In this document: piece by piece, positions 48,402 through 63,472 of the stretch | How positions within the stretch are numbered: position 1 is the first letter of the stretch | Layout: the number at the start of each line of letters is the position of its first letter | IMG/VR virus record: IMGVR_UViG_3300012988_000001 | Coordinates: 302,161 to 366,160 of that record | DNA length: 64,000 nt | Direction: 5' to 3' (one strand) | Translations under genes and position numbers: made by a program | Notes under the pieces: generated by a model | Databases searched by the model: none | The model's input: the letters and a program-made list of their open reading frames with translations, nothing else | What the model was told of the DNA's origin: nothing

Positions 48402-48736
48402 AAAAGATTGCAATCGCATTACTAACAATGGTATCATTCTATGCAACTGCTGGTGGTGAAATCACTGGTACACACAAAGTAGTTGATGTTGACAGCGTAA
48501 CATATGAGCGTGTATTCCTCGGATGCTTAAGTACTTTCAAAGTAGATGCGAAGAAGCCAGCAGAAGATCTATCCGACCTTGTTGAAGCGTGTCAGAAGTC
48601 AGCACAAAAGATTGCTTCGCAAAGCGAGTATGTTGGTACTGATGATAAGTACTACATCACTATCAAGCCCCGGAGTCCTTCTGTACCTAAAGAATCTGGT
48701 GCTGGTGTTAAACCAATAAATCCAGTGAAGAATTAG
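48398..48736 (+). CDS. secreted hypothetical protein
   Basis: signal peptide (YATA). Confidence 0.8.
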   Translation: MKKIAIALLTMVSFYATAGGEITGTHKVVDVDSVTYERVFLGCLSTFKVDAKKPAEDLSDLVEACQKSAQKIASQSEYVGTDDKYYITIKPRSPSVPKESGAGVKPINPVKN

Positions 48737-48774
48737 AATAAAGGGTTGACTTCGGTCAGCCCTTTTGTTATTAT
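48737..48774 (+). promoter_or_regulatory. class I terminator/promoter repeat
   Basis: TTGACT-N17-TATTAT. Confidence 0.85.
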
Positions 48775-48802
48775 ATCTGTATCGAAACAAAGGAGACTTA
48801 CC

Positions 48803-49570
48803 ATGACACGCGAAGAAAAAGCAATCCAAATTGAAAAGAACTTCAATAGCATGATGGATGCTCTGGAATGCCTGATCGCCCCTAACAGTGCAATCAACAG
48901 CATGATCGTGTCTGGTAAAGGCGGTGTTGGTAAAACCTATAACATCGAACAACGTCTGAATAAAGCCAACGACAACATGGAATGCAACTTCAAAAGCATT
49001 TCTGGTAAGATTACTACAATGGGTCTGTATAAGGCTCTGTACGAAAGCCGTCACAGTACTGATATCCTTCTGTTAGATGACGTTGATGTGTTCGCAAACG
49101 AAACAACTATCGACTTGCTGAAAGCTGTACTTGACACCTCAGCCATTCGTAATGTATCATACATCACTAGCTCTAAGGTACTGGCTGAATCTGGTATTCC
49201 TCAAGAGTTTGAATTCCGTGGGAAGGTAATCTTCATCACGAACAAAAACTTAGCTCGTATGGCTAAGATGGAGAATGCTCTTTCTCCACACGTTGACGCA
49301 TTGTTAACCCGTAGTATCTTTGTTGATCTGCAACTCTTTACTAATGAAGAAGTAATGATCCACATCGAAAACCTTATGCGTAAGCATAATATGTTAGCTA
49401 AGTACGGTATCAACAAAGAGGGTTCTGATTTGATCCTCGCGTGGATGCTTAAACATGAATCTAAACTGCGTTCACCTTCTTTACGTATGCCTGTACTCAT
49501 GAGTGCAATGTATAACAAATTCCCATTCGATTGGGAAGAGAAGTGTGAAAATATGTTCCTTGAAAAATAA
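48803..49570 (+). CDS. AAA+/P-loop ATPase
   Basis: GKGGVGKT Walker A, LLLDDVD Walker B, VIFITN, LLTRS. Confidence 0.85.
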   Translation: MTREEKAIQIEKNFNSMMDALECLIAPNSAINSMIVSGKGGVGKTYNIEQRLNKANDNMECNFKSISGKITTMGLYKALYESRHSTDILLLDDVDVFANETTIDLLKAVLDTSAIRNVSYITSSKVLAESGIPQEFEFRGKVIFITNKNLARMAKMENALSPHVDALLTRSIFVDLQLFTNEEVMIHIENLMRKHNMLAKYGINKEGSDLILAWMLKHESKLRSPSLRMPVLMSAMYNKFPFDWEEKCENMFLEK

Positions 49571-49580
49571 TGGAGAAACC

Positions 49581-49862
49581 ATGACTACGATCCTTTTTGT
49601 ACTATCAGCAATTGTTCTAGCTTTCTATGTGATTGGTGCAGTAGCACTAATCTGGGAAAACAAATTCACTGAATACTTTGAATTCTTTGTTGAATTTAAT
49701 GGTTGGTTCATCACCGCTCTTGGTGCATTCAATTCACTATTACTTGTACTAGCAATTACAATCGGTGCAATTGGTTCTACGCAAGTACTAATCCTACTAG
49801 CATACATCCTATTCTGCATTGGTTCTATCGCGGTTAGTACTCACAAGTTTATCCGGGCGTAA
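49581..49862 (+). CDS. membrane protein
   Basis: GGAG SD, 3 TM. Confidence 0.75.
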   Translation: MTTILFVLSAIVLAFYVIGAVALIWENKFTEYFEFFVEFNGWFITALGAFNSLLLVLAITIGAIGSTQVLILLAYILFCIGSIAVSTHKFIRA

Positions 49863-49864
49863 CT

Positions 49865-50224
49865 ATGAACTGGGAGAATATACACTTAGTTTACTACGTG
49901 TACACTTCCATTAGTGTAGCCTTCTTACTATTAGCACTTGGTAAGTACTTCTGTGTTCGGAGGCTATACGAAGTATACAACGTACTGGACCGCAAACTTG
50001 ATTACGGTTTAAATGTCTGTCTCATCATCGGCTTTGGTATTCTAATGGTAGCTTACGTTTCACTGTTCTTTGTGTGGAAAACAATGATACTATTATCAGT
50101 CTTAGCAATGATGTTATGCGGCGGGGTCTTTACTATAATCGTAGTTTGCTTTGTATTGGGTATGGGTTATGATTTTCTTGGTTCATATCATCACAAACTA
50201 AAACGTAAGAAGAATCTATATTAG
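49865..50224 (+). CDS. membrane protein
   Basis: 3 TM. Confidence 0.75.
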   Translation: MNWENIHLVYYVYTSISVAFLLLALGKYFCVRRLYEVYNVLDRKLDYGLNVCLIIGFGILMVAYVSLFFVWKTMILLSVLAMMLCGGVFTIIVVCFVLGMGYDFLGSYHHKLKRKKNLY

Positions 50225-50235
50225 GAGTACTGAAA

Positions 50236-50541
50236 ATGCTTTTCTGGACATTGCCAATTATCTTTTTAGTACTTGGTGCGTTCCTAGCACTAGGTTGGTT
50301 CTTTAACGCAGACTCTTACCATTCGGCACAAAAAACGTTTGGGATACAAATTACCATCGGTGTAGTTGGTAACTTCTACCTGCTCCCTGCGTTAGCATAT
50401 TCCGTCTGGTTTGATGGTAGCAAAGATTTATACATCATTCAAGGATTGTACTTGATATTCTTTTGTGCTTTTGCTATAATGACTGCATTCAAAGGGTTGA
50501 TGATTTATCGGGAGAAGTATATTTTGGTGCACAAAGAATGA
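50236..50541 (+). CDS. membrane protein
   Basis: AGGAG SD, 3 TM. Confidence 0.75.
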   Translation: MLFWTLPIIFLVLGAFLALGWFFNADSYHSAQKTFGIQITIGVVGNFYLLPALAYSVWFDGSKDLYIIQGLYLIFFCAFAIMTAFKGLMIYREKYILVHKE

Positions 50542-50669
50542 AACCTGAAAGCTGGATTATCGAAGACATTCGCCGTATGCGGGGAACAAAAGAACGCACA
50601 GCAATCGAAGAGTCCTACCTCGATCTATTGCTGTGGTATGTTAAAGTACTGAACGAGAAGGAATAAACT

Positions 50670-51014
50670 ATGTGGGGATTTGTTAGTGAAATCATTTTCT
50701 TTGTTCTGGCAACATTGGGTTCAATAATTGCACTCGATTATATGTTCGGAACGGATAAGCTAAAAAATATACGCGAAGCTCTCTGCACCGACCGCCACGC
50801 TATTATTCTAATAGCAGGTGCAGTAATCCTAATTGCTGGTGTCCTGCATTTATGGGCTATTATGTTGGACAGTACAACATTTAAAGACCTAACAACTTTC
50901 TACATGTCATTGGCATGGACTATTACATGGGCGTATTATACAGTACTCAATGTAAAAGAAGGTATAATTACCTTACGTAATAATAGTATCCTTAAACGTC
51001 AAAAGCCCCAGTAA
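50670..51014 (+). CDS. membrane protein
   Basis: 3 TM. Confidence 0.75.
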   Translation: MWGFVSEIIFFVLATLGSIIALDYMFGTDKLKNIREALCTDRHAIILIAGAVILIAGVLHLWAIMLDSTTFKDLTTFYMSLAWTITWAYYTVLNVKEGIITLRNNSILKRQKPQ

Positions 51015-51028
51015 GGGGCTTTTCTTTT
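51001..51028. terminator. bidirectional terminator
   Basis: AAAAGCCCC-agta-AGGGGCTTTT between convergent units. Confidence 0.8.
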
Positions 51029-52193
51029 ATGGAATATAGTACGGAACTGTAGTATCAATTGAATAAATTGGATGTGATGGCGTAAACACTGATCCAGTAC
51101 CATACAATTTACCATTGTATACAAACACTGTACCTGATAACATTTTACCCGGAAATAAAAACTCATTATAATCGGTGGGTGTTGGTGTACCTGAACTTAA
51201 TACATATGAAGAAAGTACTGCTGTACTCCCATTACCATTACCGTATTGGTTACCATTACCGACAGAATATATACCAGTAGTTGCAATAACACTTACTGTA
51301 TTACTACTCTGTTGTGAAGGCATTAACTTGACTGGTGTTGCAGCAGTACCACCAGTACCGAATTGTGTGGAAAGAGCAAACGTCAATTGGTTTCCAGTAG
51401 TTGCACCATTACCACCAAACGCCGCATTTCCAGCAAAAAGAACAACTTTCTTGGTCGAACTATTAGTCTGTGCGATAAGTTGGACAAAATCAGAACCTGC
51501 AACAACATCAGTGATTAGTGGATATGTAGTAACGACTGTTGAACTAGTACTTTGTGTCCATGTATTAACTTGTGTAGTATTGTTATTACCAAATTGTCCA
51601 TTGGCGTTATATCCAGCGAACCATACTTTATTTGAGGTATCAATATGAGCAGCACTTCGATTATGTATTGAGATTTTTAATACACCACTTTTGATCAAGA
51701 ATGGCGTTCCATATCTTGTCCCAACTGCCCCAGAACCTAATGCACCTTCTAAGTTATAACCCATACCATACATATTACCCGCATTATCAAGTATTAGTGT
51801 ACTGTACTGTCCAAACTTCATATCTACAATTGTATTAAGCGGAATCACAGGACTGATTGTTGTTATTTGGGTCCACACTTGAGTACTACTACTTCCGGTG
51901 GCTAACATCGTATACTGTAATCCACACCAGTAAGTAGTATCATCGTTTTTAATAATAAACGTGGTATAGTTCGATGAATAAAAATCACGAACATTTGTAT
52001 TTGTTAATGTCCACGTTGTTCTAGGGCTGTTGTCACCTAAACCAAAGTTACCAAATCCTTGACCTCCTAGGCAATACAACTCACCGTTATCATATAGGAT
52101 AAAGATACCACCAGTACTGGTACTAACTTTCTTTATTTTTGGTGCTTCTGGTAATATATTACCATATTTTACTATTCTTGCGAATGGAATCAT
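51027..52193 (-). CDS. MIPFARI-family protein, RCC1-like beta-propeller
   Basis: MIPFARIVKYGN; G.N..G.LG repeats. Confidence 0.85.
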   Translation of the reverse strand: MIPFARIVKYGNILPEAPKIKKVSTSTGGIFILYDNGELYCLGGQGFGNFGLGDNSPRTTWTLTNTNVRDFYSSNYTTFIIKNDDTTYWCGLQYTMLATGSSSTQVWTQITTISPVIPLNTIVDMKFGQYSTLILDNAGNMYGMGYNLEGALGSGAVGTRYGTPFLIKSGVLKISIHNRSAAHIDTSNKVWFAGYNANGQFGNNNTTQVNTWTQSTSSTVVTTYPLITDVVAGSDFVQLIAQTNSSTKKVVLFAGNAAFGGNGATTGNQLTFALSTQFGTGGTAATPVKLMPSQQSSNTVSVIATTGIYSVGNGNQYGNGNGSTAVLSSYVLSSGTPTPTDYNEFLFPGKMLSGTVFVYNGKLYGTGSVFTPSHPIYSIDTTVPYYIP

Positions 52194-52203
52194 TATTTTT
52201 CTC

Positions 52204-53295
52204 CTACGGTAATTGTATTTCAGTAAATGAAGTGGAATTTATATTAAAAACAGAAAGTGCACTGCTACCAGTACCAGTAGCATATAACTTACTATCAACA
52301 ACAACAAATACGCAGTTGTTTGAAGAACTGGACACCCATTCAACATTCGTCAATGGTAACCCAGATGAATACCTACCAAACTGTGAATGTGTTACCAAAT
52401 CACCAGTACCCAATGTATTGTTATCATTGCGACCTGCACTATATAATCCACTTTGTGGATTAGCACTGGCAAAGATGTTATCACCACACGCACCAGACTG
52501 CACCAAATCGCCTGTAGCGTTACCAATGCCTGTCCATTGACCCGAACTACCATTGGTGTTCAAAAACGTGCTACCACACGCATAGGCGACATTTGAATAG
52601 TTCACAGCATAAGTCGCTGCTCCGTTTGTAACCACATCACGGATGTTTGTCATTGTGGATGCTCCCAACGGACCTGAACTAGATGCCCCAGTACTACGCC
52701 CCAATTGACCACCACCGTTATATCCACCACAGTATAATGAACCGTCTTTCAGTACAACACATGTAACATTACTACATGAGAATATCTTAGCTCCATCTGC
52801 ATATACATATTGCGGCGTAGATGTAGTACTGTATATTTCCCCATATGTATTATAACCACGTGTGTATACTTTGCCATCAGTTAATAAGTAAACCATACCA
52901 GTACTTGTTAATGTAATATCGGCAATCGTATCTAGTGTAAAATGTGTAAAGTTTGGAGTAACATCAGTCCAGACCGTATTTTGAGTACCAGAACTTGAAG
53001 CAGTATACAATGACTGTCTTCCGATATGCCACCATGTACCATCTTCGGTGATGGCTAATGCACATTTATCACCATAACCACAATATAAACGTTGTACATT
53101 ACTTCTTATTAATTTAAATGCACCGGGACTAGAAACTCCATCGGGATATACGGAAGCATCACTTCCTCTAGCATACAAATCACCATTTTGATATAATATA
53201 AACAATGTATTATTGTTCATTATTGCCATTTTTTTAATATTCTTTAAGTCCGGGGCAATATTACCGTACTTACTTATTCTTGCAAATGGTATCAT
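52204..53295 (-). CDS. MIPFARI-family protein, RCC1-like beta-propeller
   Basis: MIPFARISKYGN; GYNGGGQLG, GRNDNNTLGTG. Confidence 0.85.
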   Translation of the reverse strand: MIPFARISKYGNIAPDLKNIKKMAIMNNNTLFILYQNGDLYARGSDASVYPDGVSSPGAFKLIRSNVQRLYCGYGDKCALAITEDGTWWHIGRQSLYTASSSGTQNTVWTDVTPNFTHFTLDTIADITLTSTGMVYLLTDGKVYTRGYNTYGEIYSTTSTPQYVYADGAKIFSCSNVTCVVLKDGSLYCGGYNGGGQLGRSTGASSSGPLGASTMTNIRDVVTNGAATYAVNYSNVAYACGSTFLNTNGSSGQWTGIGNATGDLVQSGACGDNIFASANPQSGLYSAGRNDNNTLGTGDLVTHSQFGRYSSGLPLTNVEWVSSSSNNCVFVVVDSKLYATGTGSSALSVFNINSTSFTEIQLP

Positions 53296-53344
53296 ATTGT
53301 TATCCTTTATTTTATCTCTTTTTATATTTAAGTACTCAAATTAC

Positions 53345-54076
53345 TTAAGGATATAAGTTAGTTAAACTGAAATTGGCATTAACCACTAAATCCTTACGAA
53401 CCCTGTATCTATCTACGTATGTATGGTTTGAACCATTGTTATTTACATGTCCACCTATTCCAAATCTAGTTGCACCAGTTGGTGTTGGAAATGTAAATGT
53501 AAAAGTATCTACTTGAACCCCGTTGATAAAGAAATAACTATTCTTTGTAACAGAATCATATGAATACAAAATATGTTTCCATACATTAGTACTTAATCCT
53601 GCATATAAAGTTCCTGAACGAGAAGTACTTGTCCCGGCATATTGATAGTATACATTGGGATTAAAAGGAAACCATGCCATTAGTTTAGGGTTATTATTGG
53701 AAGCCGTTATATAATGTCCAAATGGTATAGTTTCTAATGAACCATTGGAGATTTGTCTTTGCCAAAAATCTACAGTAAATGACTGACTACTCCCAAGCTG
53801 CACGGAAAGAACAGTACTGTCTAAACTACTAACTAATCCCGCAGCCAAGTTTATTATATTTGTACCGTATGGCCCTGTACTGTCAATCATTAAATTGGGA
53901 CGTAAGTATCCAGCATTCTGCATTTCCAAGGTCATAGTATTACCTACATAATCAGTAAATCCATTACTGGAAAAATTATTACCATCCCACGCCATTACTA
54001 CATTACTATCAGTATACCAAGGTGGACTAATTGGTAATGTATTACCATATTTTGATATTCTTGCAAATGGTATCAT
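53345..54076 (-). CDS. MIPFARI-family protein, LamG/ConA-like domain
   Basis: FTVDFW...WKHI...FINGVQ...GIGG...DRYRV. Confidence 0.85.
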   Translation of the reverse strand: MIPFARISKYGNTLPISPPWYTDSNVVMAWDGNNFSSNGFTDYVGNTMTLEMQNAGYLRPNLMIDSTGPYGTNIINLAAGLVSSLDSTVLSVQLGSSQSFTVDFWQRQISNGSLETIPFGHYITASNNNPKLMAWFPFNPNVYYQYAGTSTSRSGTLYAGLSTNVWKHILYSYDSVTKNSYFFINGVQVDTFTFTFPTPTGATRFGIGGHVNNNGSNHTYVDRYRVRKDLVVNANFSLTNLYP

Positions 54077-54087
54077 ATTTTGTCCTA

Positions 54088-54759
54088 TTATTTTATCTCT
54101 TTTATATTTAAGTATTTTATATATCCAGTAAAGGCAGAACTCAATCCCTTAAAGTATCCCCCAATACCAAATGTAGTGCTAGCACCAAATGGTTGGTTTG
54201 TGCCAGTAACTGTACCCTGTTGTACTCCGTTCATATCGTATATGGTTGCCGTTGTTGTCAATCCAATGCGTGTAATGACAACACGCCTCCATGCATTATC
54301 AACTGCACCAGTTACGTAGTTACGCCAATAATCACTTATTGTGTTACCAGTAGTGAATATCTGTGCTTGTCCTGAAGTTTGGTGTATTTGATAGCATATC
54401 CCTGTACTCCAGTTTGCGGCATCAGGATAATAACCAGTTCCCCATACCAATGCGGTTGATCCCGCTGAACTTAAATATTCAAATTCCATGACCCAGTTTT
54501 TAGTACTCAAATCTAACGCTGAATTTGATGTTATAGGAGAACCAAATATAGCTCCGGTGAAATACATCACATTACCAGCACTTGTATTATCGTAAACAAC
54601 CGATGCCGCACCGGAATTTAATTTTGTAAAAACATTTGCATGTGAACTATTATCAACAATATTAGTATCTCCTACAGTACTTTTTCTAAAATCAACGTCC
54701 AATAACGTTAAATCTGTAACAGTATTACCATATTTGCTTATTCGTGCAAAAGGTATCAT
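54088..54759 (-). CDS. MIPFARI-family protein, LamG/ConA-like domain
   Basis: WRRVVITR...FGIGG...FTGYI. Confidence 0.85.
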   Translation of the reverse strand: MIPFARISKYGNTVTDLTLLDVDFRKSTVGDTNIVDNSSHANVFTKLNSGAASVVYDNTSAGNVMYFTGAIFGSPITSNSALDLSTKNWVMEFEYLSSAGSTALVWGTGYYPDAANWSTGICYQIHQTSGQAQIFTTGNTISDYWRNYVTGAVDNAWRRVVITRIGLTTTATIYDMNGVQQGTVTGTNQPFGASTTFGIGGYFKGLSSAFTGYIKYLNIKEIK

Positions 54760-54770
54760 ATTTTCTCTCC

Positions 54771-55478
54771 TTAATAATGTATTCCCGCTCTCATTCTATA
54801 CCTATCAATCGCCGCAGTAAAATTAGCATTGTCTACGGTCCTGATGCTAGCTGTTGTTGTTGCACCCGGTGATGCTAATGTTCTAGTAACTGAACCCTGA
54901 TATACTTCATTAATATAAAATTTCAACAGTCCCGAAGACTTCTCATATGTAATAGCATGATGCTGCCATACTCCTTGACCATAATATGCAGTAGTAGGCC
55001 AAGAACTATAAGAAACTGGTGCACCACTGTTATTCCATAAGTGCACATATCCCGGCTGATTACCACCACTATATGCTATTAATATTCTTGATGTAGAAGC
55101 AATAGCAGAAAACGGAGTGTTAATCGCTAATGGATATAAATGCACTACCGCAGGATATACATACGCATCAAGTTGTTTAGTGTGATAATCTATAGTCCAA
55201 TCATTATCTATATAATTTCCAATAGGAAAACTACTAGCTCCTATGTTCCAATATATACCACCACTTTTAATCATCAAACCAGTACCAAACGGTGAATCTG
55301 GATAACTCTCTATAGTACTAGTTGCCGCACCACCATTACCCTTTAACAATGGTACACCATTATAATCAGTCCATCCACTTGTACCAACAATTCTAGTACT
55401 GTCAAATGCAATTAATGTATCTTTATACCACGGATCTGGTCTATTTCCGTAAGTACTTATTCTTGGAAAAGGTATCAT
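54771..55478 (-). CDS. MIPFPRI-family protein, LamG/ConA-like domain
   Basis: WTIDY...WQHHAITY...FYIN...IDRYRMRAG. Confidence 0.85.
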   Translation of the reverse strand: MIPFPRISTYGNRPDPWYKDTLIAFDSTRIVGTSGWTDYNGVPLLKGNGGAATSTIESYPDSPFGTGLMIKSGGIYWNIGASSFPIGNYIDNDWTIDYHTKQLDAYVYPAVVHLYPLAINTPFSAIASTSRILIAYSGGNQPGYVHLWNNSGAPVSYSSWPTTAYYGQGVWQHHAITYEKSSGLLKFYINEVYQGSVTRTLASPGATTTASIRTVDNANFTAAIDRYRMRAGIHY

Positions 55479-55479
55479 A

Positions 55480-56613
55480 TTAACTCACTCCCACTAATGT
55501 AGATTTAACTAGATTTATATTACCAGTATTAACACCCAATTGATATGCTAAACTATTACCACCCATAACAACACCAGTTTTCTGTAATGATATATACTGA
55601 ATAGAGGTAGCACTTTCAGTACTTGGAGTATAAATTTTAGTAATAACTTCATCAACATTTTTATTAGCACGACCAACATATGACCCAACTGAATCAAATG
55701 ACGAAGTTCTATTCACATTTCTACCACCAGCATTCAGTACTGTAGGAGTAGCAGTAAGTACATAATACGAACTCTCATAGTTCAAACCAAATAACTTAAC
55801 TCCACTAGCCATTAAAGTATTATTAAATGTTGGCCTGTTTAGATTTCCGTCCAACTCACCATTTAAATTACCATCACCATATAGTGTCCCAGTATCATCT
55901 AAGTACATAATACTCGCCCCACTTCCACATGCAATCTGAACTATATTACTAGCTGCTGTTCTCTGTATCCATGCTGTAGTACTAATATATGTTCCAAATC
56001 CAAATCCAGTACCAACCGCACGAACTGAACCAGCACCCCATACTGTACCATCATTAAGCAACAATGTACTATATGCACTACTACCTTCACTTGTAACAAA
56101 TGTATGAAACATATCTTTAATGTTATTCTTACTGCTCAAAGTCCATGTACTAATCAATCCAGTACTTGCATTTCCAAATCTACCGTTAGTTCCCGCTCCA
56201 CGGAAGTATAATGTACCATCATTTAATAGTATCATAGCACTCGCATTAGTACTGCATTGTATTTTCTTAATATTAATCGCACTAAACGGTAAAGTCATCA
56301 CTGTTGGAACAGAAACCACACCTCCACTATCAAAAGATACGGCTACGCCTATACGGTATAGCGTAGTGTTTTTAACATACATCGTGAATTGATATCCACA
56401 AAACATAGCTGATACTCCAGTATCAACCAATACAAAGGTAGAAGTCGTAGTTATTAAACTATTGTTTAGAATGTTGTTAGTATTTGTTCCTCGTCCCCAC
56501 AAGTTACCATCACTGTCTAAAACCAATGCATGTGACCTAGATACCTGTATATCAACTATATTTTTAATCTTAACTGAATTACCATATTTGGATATTCTAG
56601 CAAACGGTATCAT
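55480..56613 (-). CDS. MIPFARI-family protein, RCC1-like beta-propeller
   Basis: HALVLDSDGNLWGRGTN, GTNGRFG. Confidence 0.85.
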   Translation of the reverse strand: MIPFARISKYGNSVKIKNIVDIQVSRSHALVLDSDGNLWGRGTNTNNILNNSLITTTSTFVLVDTGVSAMFCGYQFTMYVKNTTLYRIGVAVSFDSGGVVSVPTVMTLPFSAINIKKIQCSTNASAMILLNDGTLYFRGAGTNGRFGNASTGLISTWTLSSKNNIKDMFHTFVTSEGSSAYSTLLLNDGTVWGAGSVRAVGTGFGFGTYISTTAWIQRTAASNIVQIACGSGASIMYLDDTGTLYGDGNLNGELDGNLNRPTFNNTLMASGVKLFGLNYESSYYVLTATPTVLNAGGRNVNRTSSFDSVGSYVGRANKNVDEVITKIYTPSTESATSIQYISLQKTGVVMGGNSLAYQLGVNTGNINLVKSTLVGVS

Positions 56614-56716
56614 ATTTTTTTACCCTCCCTTAAGGTAATCTCATCAATTATCTCTAAAGATACTTATTATGTATTTAACCAAAAAAAGGCCAGTACAGTC
56701 AATGTACTGACCCATC

Positions 56717-57364
56717 TTATACACTCATTGTCATCCTGTAATTATCTATTATCCCTATTAATGGTATAGCATTATCAGTACTATTACCAATCCTCAATGT
56801 ATTCGAAGATGAACTAAAACCTAAACTCATCACCTGTGATGTACCAATCTGTACATCATTAAGCCAAAAAGATAAGTTCGTACCAACTCTCTGTAACTTA
56901 ATCTTGAACCAAGTATTAATCGGTAACTTAGTAGAACCAACACCGAATCGGAATCTCTGTACCGATCCTGTAGTACTGTAACCATCTAACGATATCTGAC
57001 TAGCTGCACCAAACACGTTGTTTAATGTAACCCAATAAGATCCAGTACCTAAGTTATTATTTAAATTACCAACTAATATCTGCGTAGCAGTAGAAGTCAA
57101 ATACACATTACTCTCAATAACAAAATTAGTACTGTTACCTATACTAAACACCGATGGAACTCCACCAGAACCTATCTGCAAATATCCAGATGCTGGAAAT
57201 TGTATAGCATTATTCTGCGAAGTCACAAAATTAGTCGGTGTAACATTTATGTTTGAACTCTTTACCACAAAATCATGCATCTGATTCTGTAGTACTGAGA
57301 TTATTTTATTTGGATTGTCATACGAAGTATTCCCGTATTTCACTATCCTTGCAAAAGGTATCAT
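56717..57364 (-). CDS. MIPFARI-family protein, LamG/ConA-like domain
   Basis: NTWFKIKLQRVG...LRIG...GIIDNYRMT. Confidence 0.85.
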   Translation of the reverse strand: MIPFARIVKYGNTSYDNPNKIISVLQNQMHDFVVKSSNINVTPTNFVTSQNNAIQFPASGYLQIGSGGVPSVFSIGNSTNFVIESNVYLTSTATQILVGNLNNNLGTGSYWVTLNNVFGAASQISLDGYSTTGSVQRFRFGVGSTKLPINTWFKIKLQRVGTNLSFWLNDVQIGTSQVMSLGFSSSSNTLRIGNSTDNAIPLIGIIDNYRMTMSV

Positions 57365-58518
57365 TCTAAACCTCCCGGTAAATCCAATTTAACAAATGGT
57401 GCATTAACAATCGAACCCTGTCCAACACAGTAACCAACGCAGTATAGAGTACTTTTACCATCTACATCTTGATATAACACGTACATGTTTTTGTTACCAG
57501 ATGAAGTCCCACCGTTACCGCATATGAACTTAATATCACTGGAATTAAAACCACTAGGCATTGCTCTTATATTCACAACACTTCCACTGTTACTGTTAGA
57601 CGAACTAGCAATCGGCAACTGATTTGATGAATACGCACCAAGCATTAGCGTTGTTATTCCTATTCCACATCCAGCAAACGCAGCAACTCGTCTTGGTGCA
57701 TTAGATGCAGCAGTTAAGGTATTATTAAAACTAGCGACACCAGTTAATGAACCACAATGTACCGCCCTACCATCACTCAATATACCAGTACTGAATGTTC
57801 CACCATTCGCCATCTGATAATCTGTATAAGCTAATGTTCCCAATTTAGTGAACGAAAAAAACGTACTAGTTGCAGCAGAACTAATTAATCTGTTACTATT
57901 CGAACCTATACCATATAAGAACCCATCAGTACCCTGAATGATAAAAACAAACCCACTTGCAGTTTGCTCGAATGATATCATTTTTTCAACTGTTACTACA
58001 CTCGATGTGTTTAATCTCCATGTGCGATCTATAACAGTACTGCCATCTGCTAATGTCAACGCTACACTATATAATGTATTATCATATGTTAATATAGCAA
58101 CATAATTTGTATGATTATATATCTGCTTAATACCCTTTGCCAAAATTTCCGCAGGGATATGATCAGTAACATCCAACCATGATAAATTAGATGTTGGTAA
58201 GTTTGGAGTACTAAACTTCGCCGCTAATATTGAACCACATACATATACTTTATCATCATTTGTAACTGCTATTGTACTAGCCAGTCTATTTGAACTAAAT
58301 GATTTAACATTTGAGATATTACTTTTGTACCAACCCTGATTTGCAGTTGAAACAGTTGTCCCAATTCCCATAGACCCACTCGAAGTATATCCAAATGCCC
58401 ACATTTCACCATCAGCCGTTAATAACATCAAATGTGTATCGTTTGCTTGTAAATCTTTAATCTTTTGTAACCCCGCTACGGTATTACCATATTTGCTTAT
58501 TCTAGCAAAAGGTATCAT
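57361..58518 (-). CDS. MIPFARI-family protein, RCC1-like beta-propeller
   Basis: HLMLLTADGEMWAFG..SGSMGIG. Confidence 0.85.
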   Translation of the reverse strand: MIPFARISKYGNTVAGLQKIKDLQANDTHLMLLTADGEMWAFGYTSSGSMGIGTTVSTANQGWYKSNISNVKSFSSNRLASTIAVTNDDKVYVCGSILAAKFSTPNLPTSNLSWLDVTDHIPAEILAKGIKQIYNHTNYVAILTYDNTLYSVALTLADGSTVIDRTWRLNTSSVVTVEKMISFEQTASGFVFIIQGTDGFLYGIGSNSNRLISSAATSTFFSFTKLGTLAYTDYQMANGGTFSTGILSDGRAVHCGSLTGVASFNNTLTAASNAPRRVAAFAGCGIGITTLMLGAYSSNQLPIASSSNSNSGSVVNIRAMPSGFNSSDIKFICGNGGTSSGNKNMYVLYQDVDGKSTLYCVGYCVGQGSIVNAPFVKLDLPGGLE

Positions 58519-58528
58519 GTCTCTCTCC

Positions 58529-59446
58529 TTATGTTAACTTAAATGCTTGTGTTGTCGTTGCACCAGAATTATTCTTTCCACCCATAGTGAGTATAAAATT
58601 ATTCGCACTATTCGCGAATATATTACAGTTCACCAAATAACTAGGAACCGTACCCATAGACTCAATAGAAGAATTACCCGGAACATATGTGTACATATTA
58701 CCAGTACTATAACCAAACAATACAACAATGTCTTTATATGCAGCTATACGCCCTATAGCCTCTGTAGTGCTCAATATGACTCGCCACGTCCCAGACACCG
58801 TATTATACCCCATTAGGTATAACGTGCTCCCTGTGCCTCCCATAACCAATAATTCAGTACCAACCAACACCATGCTCGTTCCCAATGCCATAGGATATGG
58901 GGAAGTGGCTAATGTCGTCCACGTTGAAGTACTGATATCAAATACTGACGCTGTGTTAGCCGCCGCTAATGTACTATAAGAACCAAACAACCACAACTTA
59001 TTATCATAACATACCATAGAAGCATGTAATCTGGCTGCTGGTTTCGTCCCTAAAGTATTAACTAAACTCCACGCATTAGTACTGACATTATATACATATA
59101 AATCGTTCTGCATACTTCCACCCGCTGGTAATGATGTACTACCACCAAATGAATATACTCTGTTATTAACATCATCAAATGCCATTGCTGGTGCACTTCG
59201 GTTTGAACCAAATTGTGCTAGCTGTGTCCAGTTATTAGTACTAGGATTATATCTCCAAAAGTCTCGGTAATATGTATTGGTCAGTACTCCACCCATAGCA
59301 TATATCTCTCCTGTACTCGCCGCACAAAAACCCATCTCCGCTCTTGTACTCATTGCACTGTAAGTCTGTGCTTCGTAATTTCCTAAGAATGAATTTTGTG
59401 GTATAATCACATTCCCGTACTTTACTATCCTCGCAAAAGGTATCAT
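58529..59446 (-). CDS. MIPFARI-family protein, Kelch-repeat beta-propeller
   Basis: IYAMGG..WRYNP..NNW, VYSFGG..YNV..NAW, LLVMGG. Confidence 0.85.
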   Translation of the reverse strand: MIPFARIVKYGNVIIPQNSFLGNYEAQTYSAMSTRAEMGFCAASTGEIYAMGGVLTNTYYRDFWRYNPSTNNWTQLAQFGSNRSAPAMAFDDVNNRVYSFGGSTSLPAGGSMQNDLYVYNVSTNAWSLVNTLGTKPAARLHASMVCYDNKLWLFGSYSTLAAANTASVFDISTSTWTTLATSPYPMALGTSMVLVGTELLVMGGTGSTLYLMGYNTVSGTWRVILSTTEAIGRIAAYKDIVVLFGYSTGNMYTYVPGNSSIESMGTVPSYLVNCNIFANSANNFILTMGGKNNSGATTTQAFKLT

Positions 59447-60156
59447 GAATAAATCTCCTGTACTGTGAATCCGGTAACCGGATACTTCATACCAGCCCGC
59501 ATCCGGTATCTCTCAACTATAGCACTATTTGTAGGAGTACTGTTATATACATCACCACATAAAGTGAAAGCAGCCAACGATCCACCAGTACTTAATACAT
59601 CGTACTGTGCAGTAGGTACACCATCTATATACAAATAATGTCGGTTTATTGACGAATCATACATAAAACAATAATGATGCCACACTGGAGTATTCCATGG
59701 AATTGCAGTGTAATTGTAATATTGAACGTTATTACCTAATTTAAATGTCGCAGAACTACCACTATAATCATTTAATAATTGATATTTGGGAGTACTAGCC
59801 CACGGACCGCTAAATGTATTTAAACAATTAATTGCACCAAAAAATGTATATCCTGATATCAATGTCCGGTGCCAAAAATCTAAAGTATATGATGATGTAA
59901 CCCATTGAACCGGAAAACCATTTTTACCTATAATACTCTTCTTTACTTGTACCCCTGAACCATATGGCATATCAGTTCCAATACTGATAGTAGCTGAACC
60001 AGCAGCACCATTTATATCCTGTACAGTTATCGTATTACCTACATAATCAGTAAACTCTGTACTAGAAAATATAGTACTATCCCATGCCAATAATGATCCA
60101 CTGTACCATGGCAACACAGTGTTCCCGTACTTACTTATTCTCGCAAATGGTATCAT
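59443..60156 (-). CDS. MIPFARI-family protein, LamG/ConA-like domain
   Basis: YTLDFW...WHHYC...LYIDG...ERYRMRAG. Confidence 0.85.
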   Translation of the reverse strand: MIPFARISKYGNTVLPWYSGSLLAWDSTIFSSTEFTDYVGNTITVQDINGAAGSATISIGTDMPYGSGVQVKKSIIGKNGFPVQWVTSSYTLDFWHRTLISGYTFFGAINCLNTFSGPWASTPKYQLLNDYSGSSATFKLGNNVQYYNYTAIPWNTPVWHHYCFMYDSSINRHYLYIDGVPTAQYDVLSTGGSLAAFTLCGDVYNSTPTNSAIVERYRMRAGMKYPVTGFTVQEIYS

Positions 60157-60184
60157 TTCCCCCCTCCATAATTTTCCATTATTA

Positions 60185-60194
60185 CATATTTACC
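60185..60194 (-). promoter_or_regulatory. putative late promoter GGTAAATATG for the MIPFARI array
   Basis: same 10-mer and spacing as at 18675. Confidence 0.55.
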
Positions 60195-60215
60195 CAAATT
60201 CCCCAAAAGATTCTT

Positions 60216-60244
60216 GGGACAAACACCACAAAATGTCCTATAAT
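60216..60244 (+). promoter_or_regulatory. class II promoter
   Basis: GGGACA-N12-TGTCC-TATAAT. Confidence 0.75.
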
Positions 60245-60274
60245 ATCTGTATATAAATCCCGCAAGGAGCAATC

Positions 60275-61288
60275 ATGAATAAACCAAAAAATACACCATT
60301 CTATACCAAATTCATCGCACAAGTATACTCTCACATCATAACCTCCGACGACAATACCGTAGTTATGAATCTCGACAACAATACAATTCTCTCCGTGAAC
60401 TTCAATTCACCTACGTATAAAACACTAAACAATACATTCGTAATGACTAACCCTCCTGTACTACATATCAGTAATACAGAATATAACCTATACGTAAAAG
60501 TAGATACCGAAACCCTTACCGTATCTCTCAGAGACTACAAAACCGATGACCTAATCTATGATGTATCTTTCAACGAAATTAATGCCGTCCAACTACAGTC
60601 AGATGTTAAACAAAGCAAAAAACCATTCATCGACTCAGTGGCTATCGCGTACCAAATCCTTAAGTACATCCCATATGTCACACCAGCATATAACAACGGT
60701 AAAGATAAAATCTTTAATACCGCTAAAGAACTTAAAGCCCATGTAGCAGAATGCATCAATCGTACTATCTTACACTTCAATAATCGCGAACAAGAAATTA
60801 TCCTCAGTACAGAAAAAGATATGCAGGAAATCACCGGAGTAATTGATTACCTCAATAATCTCAGTACTCAAAGCGTTAAAGAAACTAATAGCCTAGAACT
60901 ACAAGTCAAAGCAACAGTCAATGACACCACCTATATCATTAATATCAACGACAAACTCTCAATAGATATTATAGATAAAGAAGATGCAAATATTACCTAC
61001 AAACTACAGTACGACCCAGATAACTCTTCTGTACTACAAGTAATAAACAAAAACTTTAATAACACTATTCATACCATCCCTACATTCATTCTACAGAATA
61101 ACAAAATGGATGAGGAAGAAATTAAAGCACTACGTAGTACATACAAACTATTCGATGCCACTTGTCAAGGTTATCGAATTTTACAACACTTCCATAACTC
61201 TGGTACGTTCTCTATTACAGATAAAGCATATGATATCAAACAACAAGTCTATTCAGCACTAGGGTATACTCCATTTATCCTCAAATAA
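60275..61288 (+). CDS. hypothetical protein (Asn/Thr-rich, G-poor coding strand)
   Basis: AAGGAG SD, 337 aa. Confidence 0.8.
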   Translation: MNKPKNTPFYTKFIAQVYSHIITSDDNTVVMNLDNNTILSVNFNSPTYKTLNNTFVMTNPPVLHISNTEYNLYVKVDTETLTVSLRDYKTDDLIYDVSFNEINAVQLQSDVKQSKKPFIDSVAIAYQILKYIPYVTPAYNNGKDKIFNTAKELKAHVAECINRTILHFNNREQEIILSTEKDMQEITGVIDYLNNLSTQSVKETNSLELQVKATVNDTTYIININDKLSIDIIDKEDANITYKLQYDPDNSSVLQVINKNFNNTIHTIPTFILQNNKMDEEEIKALRSTYKLFDATCQGYRILQHFHNSGTFSITDKAYDIKQQVYSALGYTPFILK

Positions 61289-61495
61289 GTATACGCCAGA
61301 ACGCATAGGAAGCCCGTAGGCAAGACTTCTCTTACACCCTGTACAGGTGTCGCTCCTGTAGATTGCGTCCAGTAGACGCTTATCGAAAGGATTCAACACC
61401 TGTAAAAATACCCAACTGTTGTGTTGTACAGTACTTTTCTTTTTATAATTATACAGGGAATCGTTTCATATGCAACTATTCTCCTGTACTCATGT

Positions 61496-61531
61496 GAGCT
61501 ACGGTAAGCTACGGTAAGCTACGGTAAGCTA
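61496..61531 (+). repeat. 10-bp tandem repeat (AGCTACGGTA) x ~3.5
   Basis: GAGCTACGGTAAGCTACGGTAAGCTACGGTAAGCTAC. Confidence 0.9.
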
Positions 61532-62143
61532 CTGTGAAGTACTCCTTCTGTACTTTACCCCCTTCCGCTATATCTTCTCTTAAAGAGAAGTATAAAGTAC
61601 TGAAAAGTACTTGTACCTTGTTTTGTAAAAGCCCTTTCACCTTTCAGGGAAAGTACCATCGACCCTTGAGCTAAAATCTGGAAAGTACTCCATCCTAAAT
61701 CTCGATCCTAGAAATTTTGGAGTACCTTCCAACCTTCAGCCCAATGTTGGAGTACTGACCAAATCATTAACCGATGCACCAAAAGTACTTGACACGTTTG
61801 TTAGACTATGGTAACATGCCATTAGTGGGAATCCACCCTGCGTGTACGTGTATGTATATAATACCAGTACTGGATAAATTAACAGTAAATTTAATGAAAA
61901 TAATGATTGACATGCTGGTGGGTTTTAGGCATAATAGTTGCCATAGAGTCATGGTTTTCCTTCCATAACTTTTCGTTGAATATAAACAGTACGGCTTACC
62001 CTGCAAGTATTCAGTACTGATATTAAGCTAAGAGGAAGTTCACCACCTATCACCTACCAGACTTCCAATCTGGGAAATGATAAAAAATGTAAGAATAATA
62101 AGAAGGGAGAATCCCCACTGAGAAATACAGTCTATTGAGATTA

Positions 62144-62195
62144 TCAGTACTACAATAGTTACTCCACAAGAATGAGAAGACTATTGTAGTACTGA
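62144..62195. repeat. perfect 16-bp inverted repeat, 20-nt spacer
   Basis: TCAGTACTACAATAGT / ACTATTGTAGTACTGA. Confidence 0.9.
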
Positions 62196-62311
62196 CACTT
62201 TTATGGTAAGATTTGTTGGATGGATTTTGGGTATACTTGTCCTGTACTCTGGACGGATTTTGGGCGTAGTTGTGCTAGTTGCGTTTATACGAATGATAAG
62301 CGTTCTCCTTT

Positions 62312-62413
62312 TGAGAATGGTTCTCGTTTGCATTTGCGAATGAGATTGATTCTCATTTGCTGGTGGAAATGATAATGATTCGCATTAGCCCCTGAGAATG
62401 ATAATGACTATCA
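62312..62413. promoter_or_regulatory. four Fur-box-like 7-1-7 palindromes at 29-bp period
   Basis: boxes start at 62312, 62341, 62370, 62399; best copy TGATAAT-G-ACTATCA. Confidence 0.6.
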
Positions 62414-62509
62414 TTTGCAGTACTGGCCTGTTTTTGCCATTGCCTAGCCTACCGCGACGGAATATATTATTCCGGCAGTATCTCAATTCATCTTTTTTTG
62501 TTCACGGCT

Positions 62510-62593
62510 ATTATCTCAATATATGGGGGAAGTGTCAAGCGTTTATTTTACTAAAAATAGTAGTTGACAGGGTAGCCAGTACTGATATATAAT
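62510..62593. promoter_or_regulatory. divergent sigma70 promoters
   Basis: + strand TTGACA(62564)-N18-TATAAT; - strand TTGACA(62538)-N17-GATAAT. Confidence 0.65.
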
Positions 62594-62618
62594 AATCACA
62601 ACAAAGAGAAATTTGTAG

Positions 62619-62705
62619 CCCACAGGGTGCGGGGGTCTGTCCTTAATTTTTTAAATGCGAATGATTATCATTTCGCTCATATGATACATTTCCGCACCCT
62701 GTGGG
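62619..62705 (+). ncRNA. long hairpin enclosing a fifth Fur-like box
   Basis: perfect 14-bp CCCACAGGGTGCGG/CCGCACCCTGTGGG; TGCGAAT-G-ATTATCA at 62656-62670. Confidence 0.5.
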
Positions 62706-62844
62706 TTCGGGAGTTTCGCCTCCATGTAAAACATTATACGGGTTTCCTGTGCTTGAGTCAACATCTTTTTAAAAGAAAATCGAAAATAATTCCGGTTGTT
62801 TTATCCCTCCAGTACTGGCATACTTAAAGCCTACTATATAAGGA

Positions 62845-63150
62845 ATGAAAACAATGTATCATTTAACATTAGAAAAGCATTTATCTAGCATTTTGGAAAA
62901 GGGTTTAATCCCTGCTATTGGATCGCGTAGTCGGGCGTTTGGTGAAAAAGTGGCGGCGGTATACTTGTTTAAGCACGTTGACGATGCATACGACGCTTTA
63001 GCTAATTGGTACGGGGATGCAGTAGGGGATCAATCTGTTGTACTGTTAGAAGTTGATAGCCAGCGTTTTAGTACTGTAAACGTTGCGTTTGAATATCAGT
63101 GTTTAGAAGTAATAAAAAGTACTGAAATAAAAGTTTTAGAATATCTTTAA
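62845..63150 (+). CDS. putative ADP-ribosyltransferase-fold protein (Tpt1/KptA-like)
   Basis: YHLT....SILEKGLIP....R....VYL....V.LL.V...FEY. Confidence 0.55.
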   Translation: MKTMYHLTLEKHLSSILEKGLIPAIGSRSRAFGEKVAAVYLFKHVDDAYDALANWYGDAVGDQSVVLLEVDSQRFSTVNVAFEYQCLEVIKSTEIKVLEYL

Positions 63151-63229
63151 AAAGTACTTGCATTGTTTTTTCATTCTGTCATAATAGCTCTATCGAAACG
63201 AGATACACAAACACATTAAGGAAAGTATT

Positions 63230-63472
63230 ATGTTACGCATTGTTAAAATGACTCCATCAGTAGGTAAAGCAATTGTTTATGCAGTTGTAGTATCCGAAGA
63301 TAATGCCAACCATTTACACGATTTACTGAGTCGCTTCTTTGAGCGTGAAGGATATCAATTCTTTACTATCTCATATGTTGAACGTTTTGTTTGCCCTTGT
63401 GTGGATATTTCAGAATACAAAGTAACGGCCTTTATGAATGCCGACGAAATGATCTCAAACGGTACTTTGTAA
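63230..63472 (+). CDS. hypothetical early protein
   Basis: sigma70 promoter, AAACACATTAAGGAA leader. Confidence 0.75.
   Translation: MLRIVKMTPSVGKAIVYAVVVSEDNANHLHDLLSRFFEREGYQFFTISYVERFVCPCVDISEYKVTAFMNADEMISNGTL

Follow-up and report, generated by a model that had tools for sequence, protein, structure and literature searches.

A shared N-terminal peptide on putatively swappable virion proteins of a giant bacteriophage

Ten consecutive genes and one common start

Why should ten neighbouring genes of a giant bacteriophage all begin with the same 12-residue peptide and then continue as unrelated predicted sugar- or protein-binding folds? The genes lie on the minus strand (51027-60156) of a 64-kb window, the whole stretch of DNA analysed (64,000 nucleotides of a metagenomic viral contig), and all start MIPF[AP]RI[SV][KT]YGN. 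A six-frame pattern search found this motif exactly ten times in the window, always at the start of an ORF. The earlier note had described ten genes sharing this start and diverging into four RCC1-like propellers, five LamG/ConA-like domains and one Kelch propeller, and this observation is confirmed. In the papers that could be searched, the peptide is not described. The array is made up of the following features.

60178-60195, minus strand: promoter-like motif GGGTAAATATGTAATAAT, about 35 nt upstream of gene 10
59443-60156, minus strand: gene 10, tag and LamG/ConA-like domain (237 aa; Laminin_G_3 28.1 bits; phrog_34363), first gene of the upstream operon
58529-59446, minus strand: gene 9, tag and Kelch beta-propeller (305 aa; Kelch families up to 1.5e-32), its start overlapping the gene 10 stop (ATGA); 48% identical to the kelch-like protein of XbC2
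57361-58518, minus strand: gene 8, tag and RCC1-like propeller (385 aa; RCC1_2 29.8 bits; phrog_4219)
56717-57364, minus strand: gene 7, tag and LamG-like domain (215 aa; Laminin_G_3 19.5 bits, below the cut-off), last gene of the upstream operon
56681-56713, minus strand: intrinsic terminator (11-bp stem plus T run) after gene 7
56663-56680, minus strand: promoter-like motif GGTTAAATACATAATAAG ahead of gene 6, resembling by eye the motif ahead of gene 10; function inferred
55480-56613, minus strand: gene 6, tag and RCC1-like propeller (377 aa; RCC1_2 44.0 bits), 66% identical to a Hallingskeid protein
54771-55478, minus strand: gene 5, tag (variant MIPFPRISTYGN) and LamG domain (235 aa; Laminin_G_3 31.4 bits), absent from the close relative L031
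54088-54759, minus strand: gene 4, tag and ConA-like jelly-roll (223 aa; Laminin_G_3 20.7 bits, below the cut-off), the most widely conserved member (phrog_6011, 'virion structural protein')
53345-54076, minus strand: gene 3, tag and LamG domain (243 aa; Laminin_G_3 37.4 bits), replaced by an RCC1 gene in L031
53296-53344, minus strand: 49-nt spacer upstream of gene 2 that repeats the 3' end of gene 4 (TACTTAAATATAAAA...), a relic of a duplication or recombination joint (83% identity between 53259-53322 and 54040-54103)
52204-53295, minus strand: gene 2, tag and RCC1-like propeller (363 aa; RCC1 29.7 bits, RCC1_2 28.0 bits)
51027-52193, minus strand: gene 1, tag and RCC1-like propeller (388 aa; RCC1_2 22.6 bits; phrog_4219, 9e-62), last gene of the array
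51001-51023: bidirectional intrinsic terminator between the array and the convergent plus-strand genes

The 36 nt encoding the tag lie at 60121-60156 in gene 10 and, in genes 9 to 1, at 59411-59446, 58483-58518, 57329-57364, 56578-56613, 55443-55478, 54724-54759, 54041-54076, 53260-53295 and 52158-52193 (all minus strand).

The earlier note placed a putative late promoter at 60185, which corresponds to GGGTAAATATGTAATAAT at 60195-60178. A near-identical GGTAAATATG (18684-18675) lies about 35 nt upstream of the only other minus-strand gene of the window (17506-18645), which is a virion structural protein. A shared promoter is therefore plausible, although it is not shown to be late.

Fold assignments

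RCC1-repeat models (PF00415, PF13540) reach their gathering scores in genes 1, 2, 6 and 8 (cut-off 22 bits for RCC1_2), while the whole-domain model PF25390 stays below its cut-off of 150 bits. The AlphaFold2 (AF2) model of gene 6 (pLDDT 71) is all-beta and blade-like, with the propeller beginning at residue 19. Laminin_G_3 (PF13385, cut-off 27.6 bits) is above gathering in genes 3, 5 and 10 but not in genes 4 and 7. Gene 4 was confirmed as a ConA-like jelly-roll by AF2 (pLDDT 83.7) and Foldseek, which places it nearest to carbohydrate-binding modules and lectins (TM 0.5-0.65) and, among viral models, matches it to LamG domains of tail-fibre and baseplate proteins. Gene 7 rests on the sub-threshold Pfam hit, two weak PHROG hits and 52% identity to XbC2_582, annotated as a LamG domain protein. 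Kelch in gene 9 is far above threshold (113 bits on PF24681, with Kelch_1, 2, 3, 4 and 6 all above their cut-offs), and a further search gave KEAP1 and designed Kelch proteins. No solved structure contains a homologue.

The proteins are of low charge. Lys and Arg make up 5-6%, Asp and Glu 3-6% and Ser, Thr, Asn, Gly and Gln 36-47%, against 11, 15 and 25% for other ORFs of the window, and net charge is -2 to +6. The basic character expected of an RCC1 protein in the functional sense (chromatin or DNA condensation factor) was not found, and similarity to RCC1 proteins is limited to the repeat scaffold (best PDB hits HERC2 and HERC1 at about 1e-6).

Selection acts on the peptide

The tag holds the only invariant columns (M1 P3 F4 R6 Y10 N12) of 19 LamG-type proteins, which are otherwise 14-39% identical. 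In 23 RCC1-type proteins the invariant columns are M1 P3 F4 N12 plus three Gly, so that four of seven lie in the tag. Synonymous codons vary freely (Ser is AGY and TCN, Arg is AGR and CGA, and Pro, Ala, Gly and Tyr codons also vary) and upstream DNA differs between genes; selection is therefore on the peptide and not on the DNA. In AF2 models of genes 4 and 6, residues 1-12 have a pLDDT of about 45-53, while the domains start at residue 17-19 with high confidence. Although low pLDDT does not prove that the tag is unpacked, AlphaFold does not place it confidently in either fold. The peptide is thus a genuine conserved module, independent of the fold that follows.

It is possible that the shared start has no separate function, being either inherited through repeated duplication and recombination at the 5' end with constraints on translation initiation, or an integral edge element of each fold. 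The tag-coding 36 nt are 78-92% identical across the ten copies and A/T-rich, genes 2 and 3 share about 60 nt around the start, and homology blocks with L031 end at the tag. However, amino-acid conservation persists across genera while codons diverge, including switches within the sixfold-degenerate codon sets of Ser and of Arg. The same peptide sits on three unrelated folds, is more conserved than any domain residue and has low confidence in both AF2 models, and other lineages replaced it with a different shared peptide at the same boundary. This explanation is very unlikely.

Distribution of the tag

A profile of the tag, a search proposed beforehand as a test of copy number and domain diversity, was compared with 1.84 billion protein representatives and gave 127 hits, about 124 of them genuine, of which 117 start exactly at residue 1. 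They are fused to RCC1, LamG, Kelch, RCC1 plus Kelch and unclassified domains. A DNA pattern scan found the tag only in jumbo contigs of about 350 kb and their fragments. The tag occurs only in RaK2-like jumbo phages, at 2 to about 17 copies per genome, with the group consensus M-[IL]-P-F-x-R-[IML]-x-x-Y-G-N.

Tags are more alike within a genome (0.80) than between genomes (0.61), with 0 of 2000 permutations reaching that difference, and the genome-specific variant is shared across folds. This similarity could partly reflect recent duplication or recombination and not co-adaptation to a partner. LamG homologues in 4MG, CR8, PhiEaH1 and PCH45 carry a different shared head (M-x-E-x-x-L...G-G/K) joined to the same first strand, indicating that the N-terminal peptide is specific to the lineage.

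An assembly handle, and not a permanent docking peptide, may also be considered. The tag would be recognized by a dedicated chaperone or modifying enzyme, or tags would associate with one another to bundle several modules into hetero-oligomers, which then attach by other means. AF2 draws residues 4-11 as a short helix in both models, at low confidence; the strict requirement for position 1 would also suit recognition by an enzyme or chaperone, and tandem RCC1-Kelch fusions show that the modules can work in series. In contrast, twelve residues are too few for a stable self-bundle, and no candidate chaperone gene is conserved inside the array. The flanks are a P-loop NTPase and small membrane proteins, which are also present in K64-1, where there is no array at this locus. 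This reading is unlikely.

Tagged homologues in virions of relatives

Published mass spectrometry of CBB virions detected CBB_247, 536, 537, 548, 549, 551, 552 and 553 (PMC5259590), all of which are tagged, representing 8 of 10 tagged proteins. Five of the six MS-positive CBB proteins absent from GAP32 are tagged. In phAPEC6, gp003, 005, 006, 007, 009 and 010 are MS-positive (PMC7247149) and all are tagged (6 of 12 tagged proteins). Gene 4 is the orthologue of CBB_553, at 38% identity. All of this evidence comes from relatives and not from the present phage, which is known only as a metagenomic contig; peptide counts are low and the data are from whole virions, without localization.

The earlier note connected the array with hair-like tail appendages of RaK2/121Q-like phages. 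Such appendages are documented for CBB, phAPEC6 and fEgEco12 (PMC5259590, PMC7247149, PMC13070987), but no such report was found for RaK2 or 121Q themselves. GAP32, which has not been reported as hairy, also has tagged proteins, so the partner need not be specific to the hairs and the link to them is only correlative. Furthermore, globular proteins of 25-43 kDa cannot themselves form hairs 119 nm long.

The main rival is a capsid-targeting signal like that of T4, with the peptide binding the scaffolding core so that the proteins are packaged inside the head, possibly as the inner body or as ejected proteins acting in the host. Rapid cassette turnover would then reflect an arms race with host defences. 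The formal architecture matches the hyperplastic T4 internal-protein locus, in which a leader of about 10 aa is shared by unrelated cargo genes in a variable tandem locus. The whole-virion data would fit an internal location, phAPEC6 has an inner body for which its authors suggested the RCC1 proteins, and CBB encodes an S77, gp21-type prohead protease. However, there is no conserved Glu in or after the tag: position 9 is K, Q, E, N, S, T or D across phages and the first Glu in the ten proteins lies anywhere from residue 16 to 176. The T4-type L/I-x-E cleavage site that defines a capsid targeting sequence (CTS) is therefore absent. The net charge and the composition rich in Ser, Thr, Asn and Gly are unlike those of basic DNA-associated internal proteins, and the folds are large, rigid beta-propellers and lectins, with nearest neighbours among carbohydrate-binding modules and tail-fibre LamG domains. 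An internal, capsid-targeted location is unlikely but not excluded.

Cassette turnover

L031 keeps some genes of the array at 87-96% identity but replaces, inserts or deletes whole neighbouring genes, with homology ending at the tag. Best orthologues of the ten genes are spread over several phages. The genes thus behave as interchangeable cassettes, and the array has the conserved anchor, exchangeable distal module and mosaic inheritance seen in phage receptor-binding proteins with an N-terminal anchor.

A putative docking peptide

The most likely explanation (probability about 0.5) is that the 12-residue N-terminus is an address or docking peptide, a short linear motif at a free N-terminus that binds one conserved site on the virion of RaK2-like jumbo phages and so incorporates whatever globular module follows it. 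In this view the modules most likely sit on the particle surface, on the hair-like fibres or on other tail or capsid decoration sites, where they would act as a mixed, low-copy set of glycan- or protein-binding adhesins. The array is a cassette locus in which whole genes are gained, lost and replaced at gene boundaries, with the conserved tag-coding 36 nt at every junction.

The analysis itself establishes the tag and its conservation at the peptide level, its strictly N-terminal position, its restriction to this phage group, the fold assignments and the turnover of cassettes, while published mass spectrometry establishes the presence of tagged homologues in virions of two relatives. That the tag binds anything, that there is a single shared partner, a surface location, carbohydrate binding, an adhesin function and recombination within the tag-coding sequence are inferences. 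The interpretation in the earlier note, that a shared docking or assembly tag plugs a library of adhesins onto one virion scaffold to give a swappable host-recognition system, is partly supported: a fold-independent module, virion presence in relatives, interchangeable genes and binding scaffolds are borne out, but docking onto one scaffold, the identity of that scaffold, a position on the hairs and a role in host recognition are not shown, and no genetic data on receptor binding or host range were found in relatives.

A more far-reaching possibility, which remains tentative, is that RaK2-like jumbo phages carry a natural plug-and-display system, the peptide being by itself sufficient to load any folded module onto a fixed site of the virion and the tag-coding sequence also serving as the recombination joint that shuffles a library of lectin and propeller adhesins between phages. 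Other large myoviruses would use an analogous but different peptide (M-x-E-x-x-L...GGK) on the same domain family, pointing to a general and so far unrecognized address-label principle for accessory virion proteins.

In every RaK2-like jumbo phage, proteins now annotated as 'DNA condensation proteins', 'kelch-like proteins' or 'structural proteins' become one system, defined by a shared address peptide and not by fold. As five of the six CBB-specific virion proteins carry the tag, they are candidates in the open question of what the hair-like appendages of CBB- and phAPEC6-type phages consist of and do. The array points to the most variable part of these particles, and so to a likely determinant of environmental adhesion or host interaction. 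If the peptide alone is sufficient for incorporation, it would be a very small tag for decorating jumbo-phage particles, and the alternative peptide in rV5-like and other large phages suggests that the principle extends beyond this group.

Comparison with known systems

The same gene arrays have been annotated as tandem duplications of a 'regulator of chromosome condensation / DNA condensation protein' in Munch, 121Q and phAPEC6 (PMC8273493, PMC7247149). The RCC1-repeat assignment is correct and tandem duplication was recognized. However, those papers treat the arrays as duplicates of one gene, infer a role with DNA and do not report that LamG and Kelch neighbours share the same N-terminus. 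The composition found here argues against DNA binding, and the label is not supported.

In the T4 CTS and the polymorphic internal-protein locus of T-even phages, a leader of about 10-12 residues is likewise shared by otherwise unrelated proteins encoded in a variable tandem locus, and the leader is sufficient to address cargo to the particle. The T4 leader ends in an L/I-x-E site cut by the gp21 protease and its cargo is small, basic and internal, whereas here no conserved Glu or cleavage motif exists and the cargo is near-neutral propellers and lectins of 215-388 aa.

The N-terminal tail of adenovirus fibre is also a short conserved peptide, anchoring receptor-binding proteins with divergent distal domains to one conserved capsid site, the penton base. 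That is a eukaryotic virus with trimeric fibres and one or two fibre genes, while here there are 10-17 apparently globular paralogues per genome, with no sequence similarity to the fibre tail and a partner that is only inferred. In encapsulins, short linear peptides on unrelated cargo proteins dock onto a shell built from the HK97 fold, and the peptide, not the cargo fold, determines loading. Those peptides are usually C-terminal, the compartments are cellular, the cargo is internal and there is no sequence relationship.

Finally, short conserved N-terminal anchors of secondary receptor-binding proteins in Klebsiella phages, and the N-terminal head-binding domains of P22-like tailspikes, join a conserved anchor to exchangeable receptor-binding parts, with horizontal swapping at the junction. 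Those anchors belong to trimeric beta-helix depolymerases or tailspikes, and most are longer domains. Here the anchor is 12 residues on lectin or propeller modules, and K64-1, which has branched depolymerase fibres, has no array at the syntenic locus.

Organization and predicted folds of the tagged genes

Ten consecutive minus-strand ORFs encoding proteins of 215-388 aa lie between 51027 and 60156, and all begin MIPF[AP]RI[SV][KT]YGN. A six-frame search for this motif found it exactly ten times in the 64-kb window, each time at the first ATG of one of these ORFs. The observation made in the earlier note is real, and the pattern is far beyond chance. With genes numbered from the low coordinate, Pfam assigned genes 1, 2, 6 and 8 to RCC1-like propellers (RCC1_2 or RCC1 repeats at or above gathering), genes 3, 5 and 10 to LamG/ConA-like domains (Laminin_G_3 above gathering) and gene 9 to a Kelch propeller (many Kelch models, up to 1.5e-32). 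Genes 4 and 7 were also LamG/ConA-like, although with Laminin_G_3 below gathering (20.7 and 19.5 bits, respectively, against 27.6). The AlphaFold2 model of gene 4 (mean pLDDT 83.7) is a ConA-like jelly-roll whose nearest solved structures are carbohydrate-binding modules and lectins. The count of four RCC1, five LamG and one Kelch given in the earlier note is therefore correct.

Genes 10-7 overlap or are 10 nt apart and end at a strong terminator, while genes 6-1 follow with gaps of 1-49 nt and end at a bidirectional terminator. Features of the window outside the ten ORFs are as follows.

3012-3097, 5550-5625 and 9874-9961 (+): three tRNA genes, two tRNA-Gly(TCC) and one tRNA-Leu(TAA); the first Gly gene is 86 nt, unusually long for a tRNA-Gly
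17506-18645 (-): virion structural protein (phrog_10468, no Pfam hit), the only other minus-strand gene among about 50 kb of plus-strand small genes
18675-18684: GGTAAATATG, preceding 17506-18645
38982-40571 (+): 529-aa ORF matching HNH and endonuclease families (phrog_681, phrog_559), probably a homing endonuclease sitting among early genes
48746-51014 (+): P-loop NTPase (phrog_1250) followed by a block of small predicted membrane proteins
51001-51023: bidirectional terminator after gene 1
56713-56687, plus a T run: terminator after gene 7
60275-61288 (+): 337-aa ORF, transcribed divergently from the array, with no Pfam or PHROG match and no counterpart next to the arrays of Hallingskeid, CBB or XbC2

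A scan for sigma-70 promoters showed no enrichment (40 sites found against 45 expected) and was discarded in favour of a shared TAAATAY motif. GGGTAAATATGTAATAAT lies about 35 nt upstream of gene 10 and GGTTAAATACATAATAAG lies ahead of gene 6. In addition, GGTAAATATG, the same motif as that found upstream of gene 10, precedes the virion structural gene at 17506-18645. Judged from sequence alone, and without bearing on its timing, a shared promoter for virion genes is plausible. The canonical T4 late box TATAAATA is absent from the whole window.

Conservation of the N-terminal peptide

The ten tag-coding 36-mers are 78 to 92% identical, but the differences are synonymous. Pro is encoded by CCA, CCT or CCG, Ala by GCA, GCT or GCG, Arg by AGA, AGG or CGA, Ser by AGT, AGC, TCC or TCA, Tyr by TAC or TAT and Gly by GGG, GGT or GGA. 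Upstream sequences differ and each gene has its own Shine-Dalgarno. A DNA-level repeat or gene conversion was rejected as the cause of the conservation because of this synonymous variation. In an alignment of 19 LamG-type tagged proteins from several phages (14 to 39% identical), the only invariant columns are M1, P3, F4, R6, Y10 and N12, while in 23 RCC1-type proteins they are M1, P3, F4 and N12 plus three glycines. The tag is thus the most constrained part of these proteins.

The tag is not confidently part of either fold modelled. In the AlphaFold2 models of gene 4 (LamG) and gene 6 (RCC1), residues 1-12 have a pLDDT of about 45-53 and are drawn as a short helix, whereas the domains begin at residue 17-19 with high confidence. 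The possibility that the tag forms the velcro strand of the propeller was not supported by the gene 6 model. An invariant sequence with low structural confidence is the usual signature of a linear motif that becomes ordered only on a partner, although for this tag that is an inference. Searches of PDB sequences with LamG, RCC1 and Kelch members gave no virion structure, only generic HERC2, KEAP1 and designed Kelch proteins, so the partner could not be read from a structure.

Distribution of the tag

Megablast of the array gave no match among 50,697 deposited phages, so the genome has no close deposited relative. A back-translated tag pattern scanned against IMG/VR returned 21 loci, two of which (L020 and L028) together equal window positions 48419-64000, so the window comes from the contig IMGVR_UViG_3300012988_000001 (366,160 bp). 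Under that pattern the ten copies of the array are the only ones in this contig. All other genuine hits lie in RaK2-like jumbo genomes of about 350 kb or their fragments. Arrays that were retrieved contain 10 tagged genes in Hallingskeid, 10 in CBB, 11 in XbC2, 12 in phAPEC6, 11 in 121Q, 16 in Munch, at least 10 in PHA46, 4 in BF and at least 2 in GAP32. The group consensus is M-[IL]-P-F-x-R-[IML]-x-x-Y-G-N.

A 31-position tag profile, searched without a word index against 1.84 billion protein representatives, gave 127 hits at E of 0.001 or better. About 124 are genuine and 117 start exactly at residue 1; the few offsets look like mis-called starts. Tag-stripped HMMs classified the hits as 98 RCC1, 13 LamG, 2 Kelch, 1 RCC1+Kelch and a few unclassified, although the profile is biased towards RCC1-type linkers. 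Two long tagged proteins, of 688 and 667 aa (XbC2_591, locus L003:359-2425, and locus L015:6413-8416), are tandem RCC1 + Kelch double propellers, so the modules can be combined in one chain. A degenerate tag variant, MLPFPIIS[NKH]T[TN], which lacks the Y-G-N part, is found in XbC2 (L003:5481-6647 and 8927-9553) and in phage BF (L012:2189-3325 and 5394-6191). One example (XbC2 8927-9553) is the closest orthologue of gene 7, which has the canonical tag. Several array members in 121Q (L007:17726-17932, 20066-20194 and 21395-21619) are annotated as short fragments, for example a 68-aa tagged ORF, suggesting frameshifts or decay within the array.

The P-loop NTPase beside the array has homologues in more than 1300 phages, including T4-like ones, where it is often annotated 'thioredoxin'. 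The block comprising this gene and the small membrane proteins is syntenic in CBB, PHA46 and K64-1 whether or not the array follows. At this locus K64-1 has no array and no tag, and the first 50 kb of RaK2 also lack the tag; on this evidence, absence from these two phages and from the Alcyoneusvirus genus is only partly established.

Homologues of gene 4 outside the RaK2-like group, in rV5-like and other large phages, lack the MIPFAR...YGN tag. They share another short N-terminus (M-x-E-x-x-L...G-G/K), which joins the same first β-strand (...LLD[IV][DN]F) at the same boundary. The N-termini are MEEMLLVGGGK in 4MG_167 and MLEAMLTAGK in 4MG_179 (phage 4MG, L029:4977-5627 and 9960-10613), MQELLTVGGG in CR8_038 (L034:344-1006), MFESNLMGKK in PhiEaH1 (L035:359-1000) and MLESMLAGK in PCH45 (L030:3980-4642). 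This possible second family of address peptides supports the idea that such peptides are lineage-specific.

Presence of tagged homologues in virions

Published data on relatives link tagged proteins to the virion. Structural proteins of CBB found by ESI-MS/MS include CBB_247, 536, 537, 548, 549, 551, 552 and 553 (PMC5259590), and all eight begin with the tag. CBB_550 and CBB_554, both Kelch proteins, were not detected. The same paper names six MS-positive proteins whose genes are missing from the morphologically similar but non-hairy GAP32 (CBB_144, 247, 536, 537, 551 and 552) and argues that the tail hairs should be encoded among such genes. Five of the six carry the tag, a link made here and not in that paper. 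In phAPEC6, which has hairs at three rings on the sheath and on the capsid, gp003, 005, 006, 007, 009 and 010 were detected at low coverage (PMC7247149), and all are tagged.

Cassette turnover

A word-indexed protein homology search with gene 4 gave only two hits because of the word index, but one of them led to L031, a Logan contig from a close relative. L031 shares genes 9, 8, 4 and 2 at 87 to 96% and gene 6 at 74% amino-acid identity, but its gene order differs. Between genes 8 and 6, gene 7 is replaced by a new RCC1 gene (375 aa) plus a new 435-aa LamG gene; between genes 6 and 4, where the window has gene 5, there is nothing; and between genes 4 and 2, gene 3 is replaced by a new RCC1 gene (385 aa). 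Nucleotide homology blocks end exactly 36 nt into the next gene, which is the end of the tag. Inside the window, the 49-nt spacer before gene 2 repeats the 3' end of gene 4, a relic of such a joint. That recombination uses the tag-coding sequence is inferred from where the breakpoints lie.

Best counterparts of the ten genes are scattered. Genes 6 and 4 match Hallingskeid best (66% and 46%) and genes 7 and 9 match the Xanthomonas phage XbC2 best (52% and 48%), while genes 3, 5 and 10 have no Hallingskeid counterpart. By one core protein, that of the flanking core gene, the nearest relatives are Salmonella phage PHA46 (83%) and Erwinia phage Hallingskeid (67%). The fEgEco12 paper notes that 'chromosome condensation regulators' are among the few strongly divergent proteins between two phages of one species.

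Tags are more similar within a genome (mean identity 0.80 over positions 2-12) than between genomes (0.61), and none of 2000 label permutations reached that difference. The genome-specific variant is shared across folds, with ARISK on LamG and RCC1 in the window and PQLVQ, in which R6 is changed to Q, on Kelch, LamG and RCC1 in XbC2. Because codons are not homogenized, co-adaptation of all tags to one shared site is the simplest reading, although recent duplication and recombination could also contribute.

Possible location and role

Composition separates the ten proteins from the rest of the window. K+R is 5 to 6%, D+E is 3 to 6% and S+T+N+G+Q is 36 to 47%, against 11, 15 and 25% elsewhere, and net charge is -2 to +6. 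This is typical of phage fibre and surface proteins and unlike basic DNA-associated internal proteins. The 'DNA condensation' label therefore rests only on the name of the RCC1 repeat. Viral structural neighbours of gene 4 include LamG domains of tail-fibre and baseplate proteins, and PHROG hits of the RCC1 genes include 'tail protein' families. A surface adhesin role is thus favoured but not shown. The modules are too small to form the 119-nm hairs themselves, but could sit on the hairs, at their bases or elsewhere. As GAP32 also has tagged proteins, the partner is probably a conserved virion component.

The earlier note took the peptide to be a docking or assembly tag on a library of binding modules, giving a swappable host-recognition system, and this is supported in part. 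A docking or assembly tag is the best-supported reading (probability about 0.5). The analysis itself establishes the peptide-level conservation, the distribution of the tag and the exchange of whole genes, and published mass spectrometry places tagged homologues in virions of two relatives. Binding of the tag to a single shared, as yet unidentified partner, a surface location of the proteins on the particle and any part in host recognition are inferred.

The main rival, a role in capsid targeting, appears unlikely. A T4-type capsid-targeting signal needs an L/I-x-E protease site after the leader, and CBB does encode an S77 protease. However, position 9 of the tag is variable and the first Glu lies at residue 16-176 in the ten proteins, so this defining feature is lacking. 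No paper was found in a full-text search for the motif strings, and a shared N-terminus is not mentioned in the CBB, phAPEC6, 121Q, Munch and fEgEco12 papers or in a broad jumbo-phage survey (Iyer/Aravind), although the literature searched was incomplete and this is absence of evidence only. In that literature this tag, its restriction to one jumbo-phage group, its use on three unrelated folds and its place at cassette junctions appear undescribed, whereas the principle of short address peptides is known from other systems.
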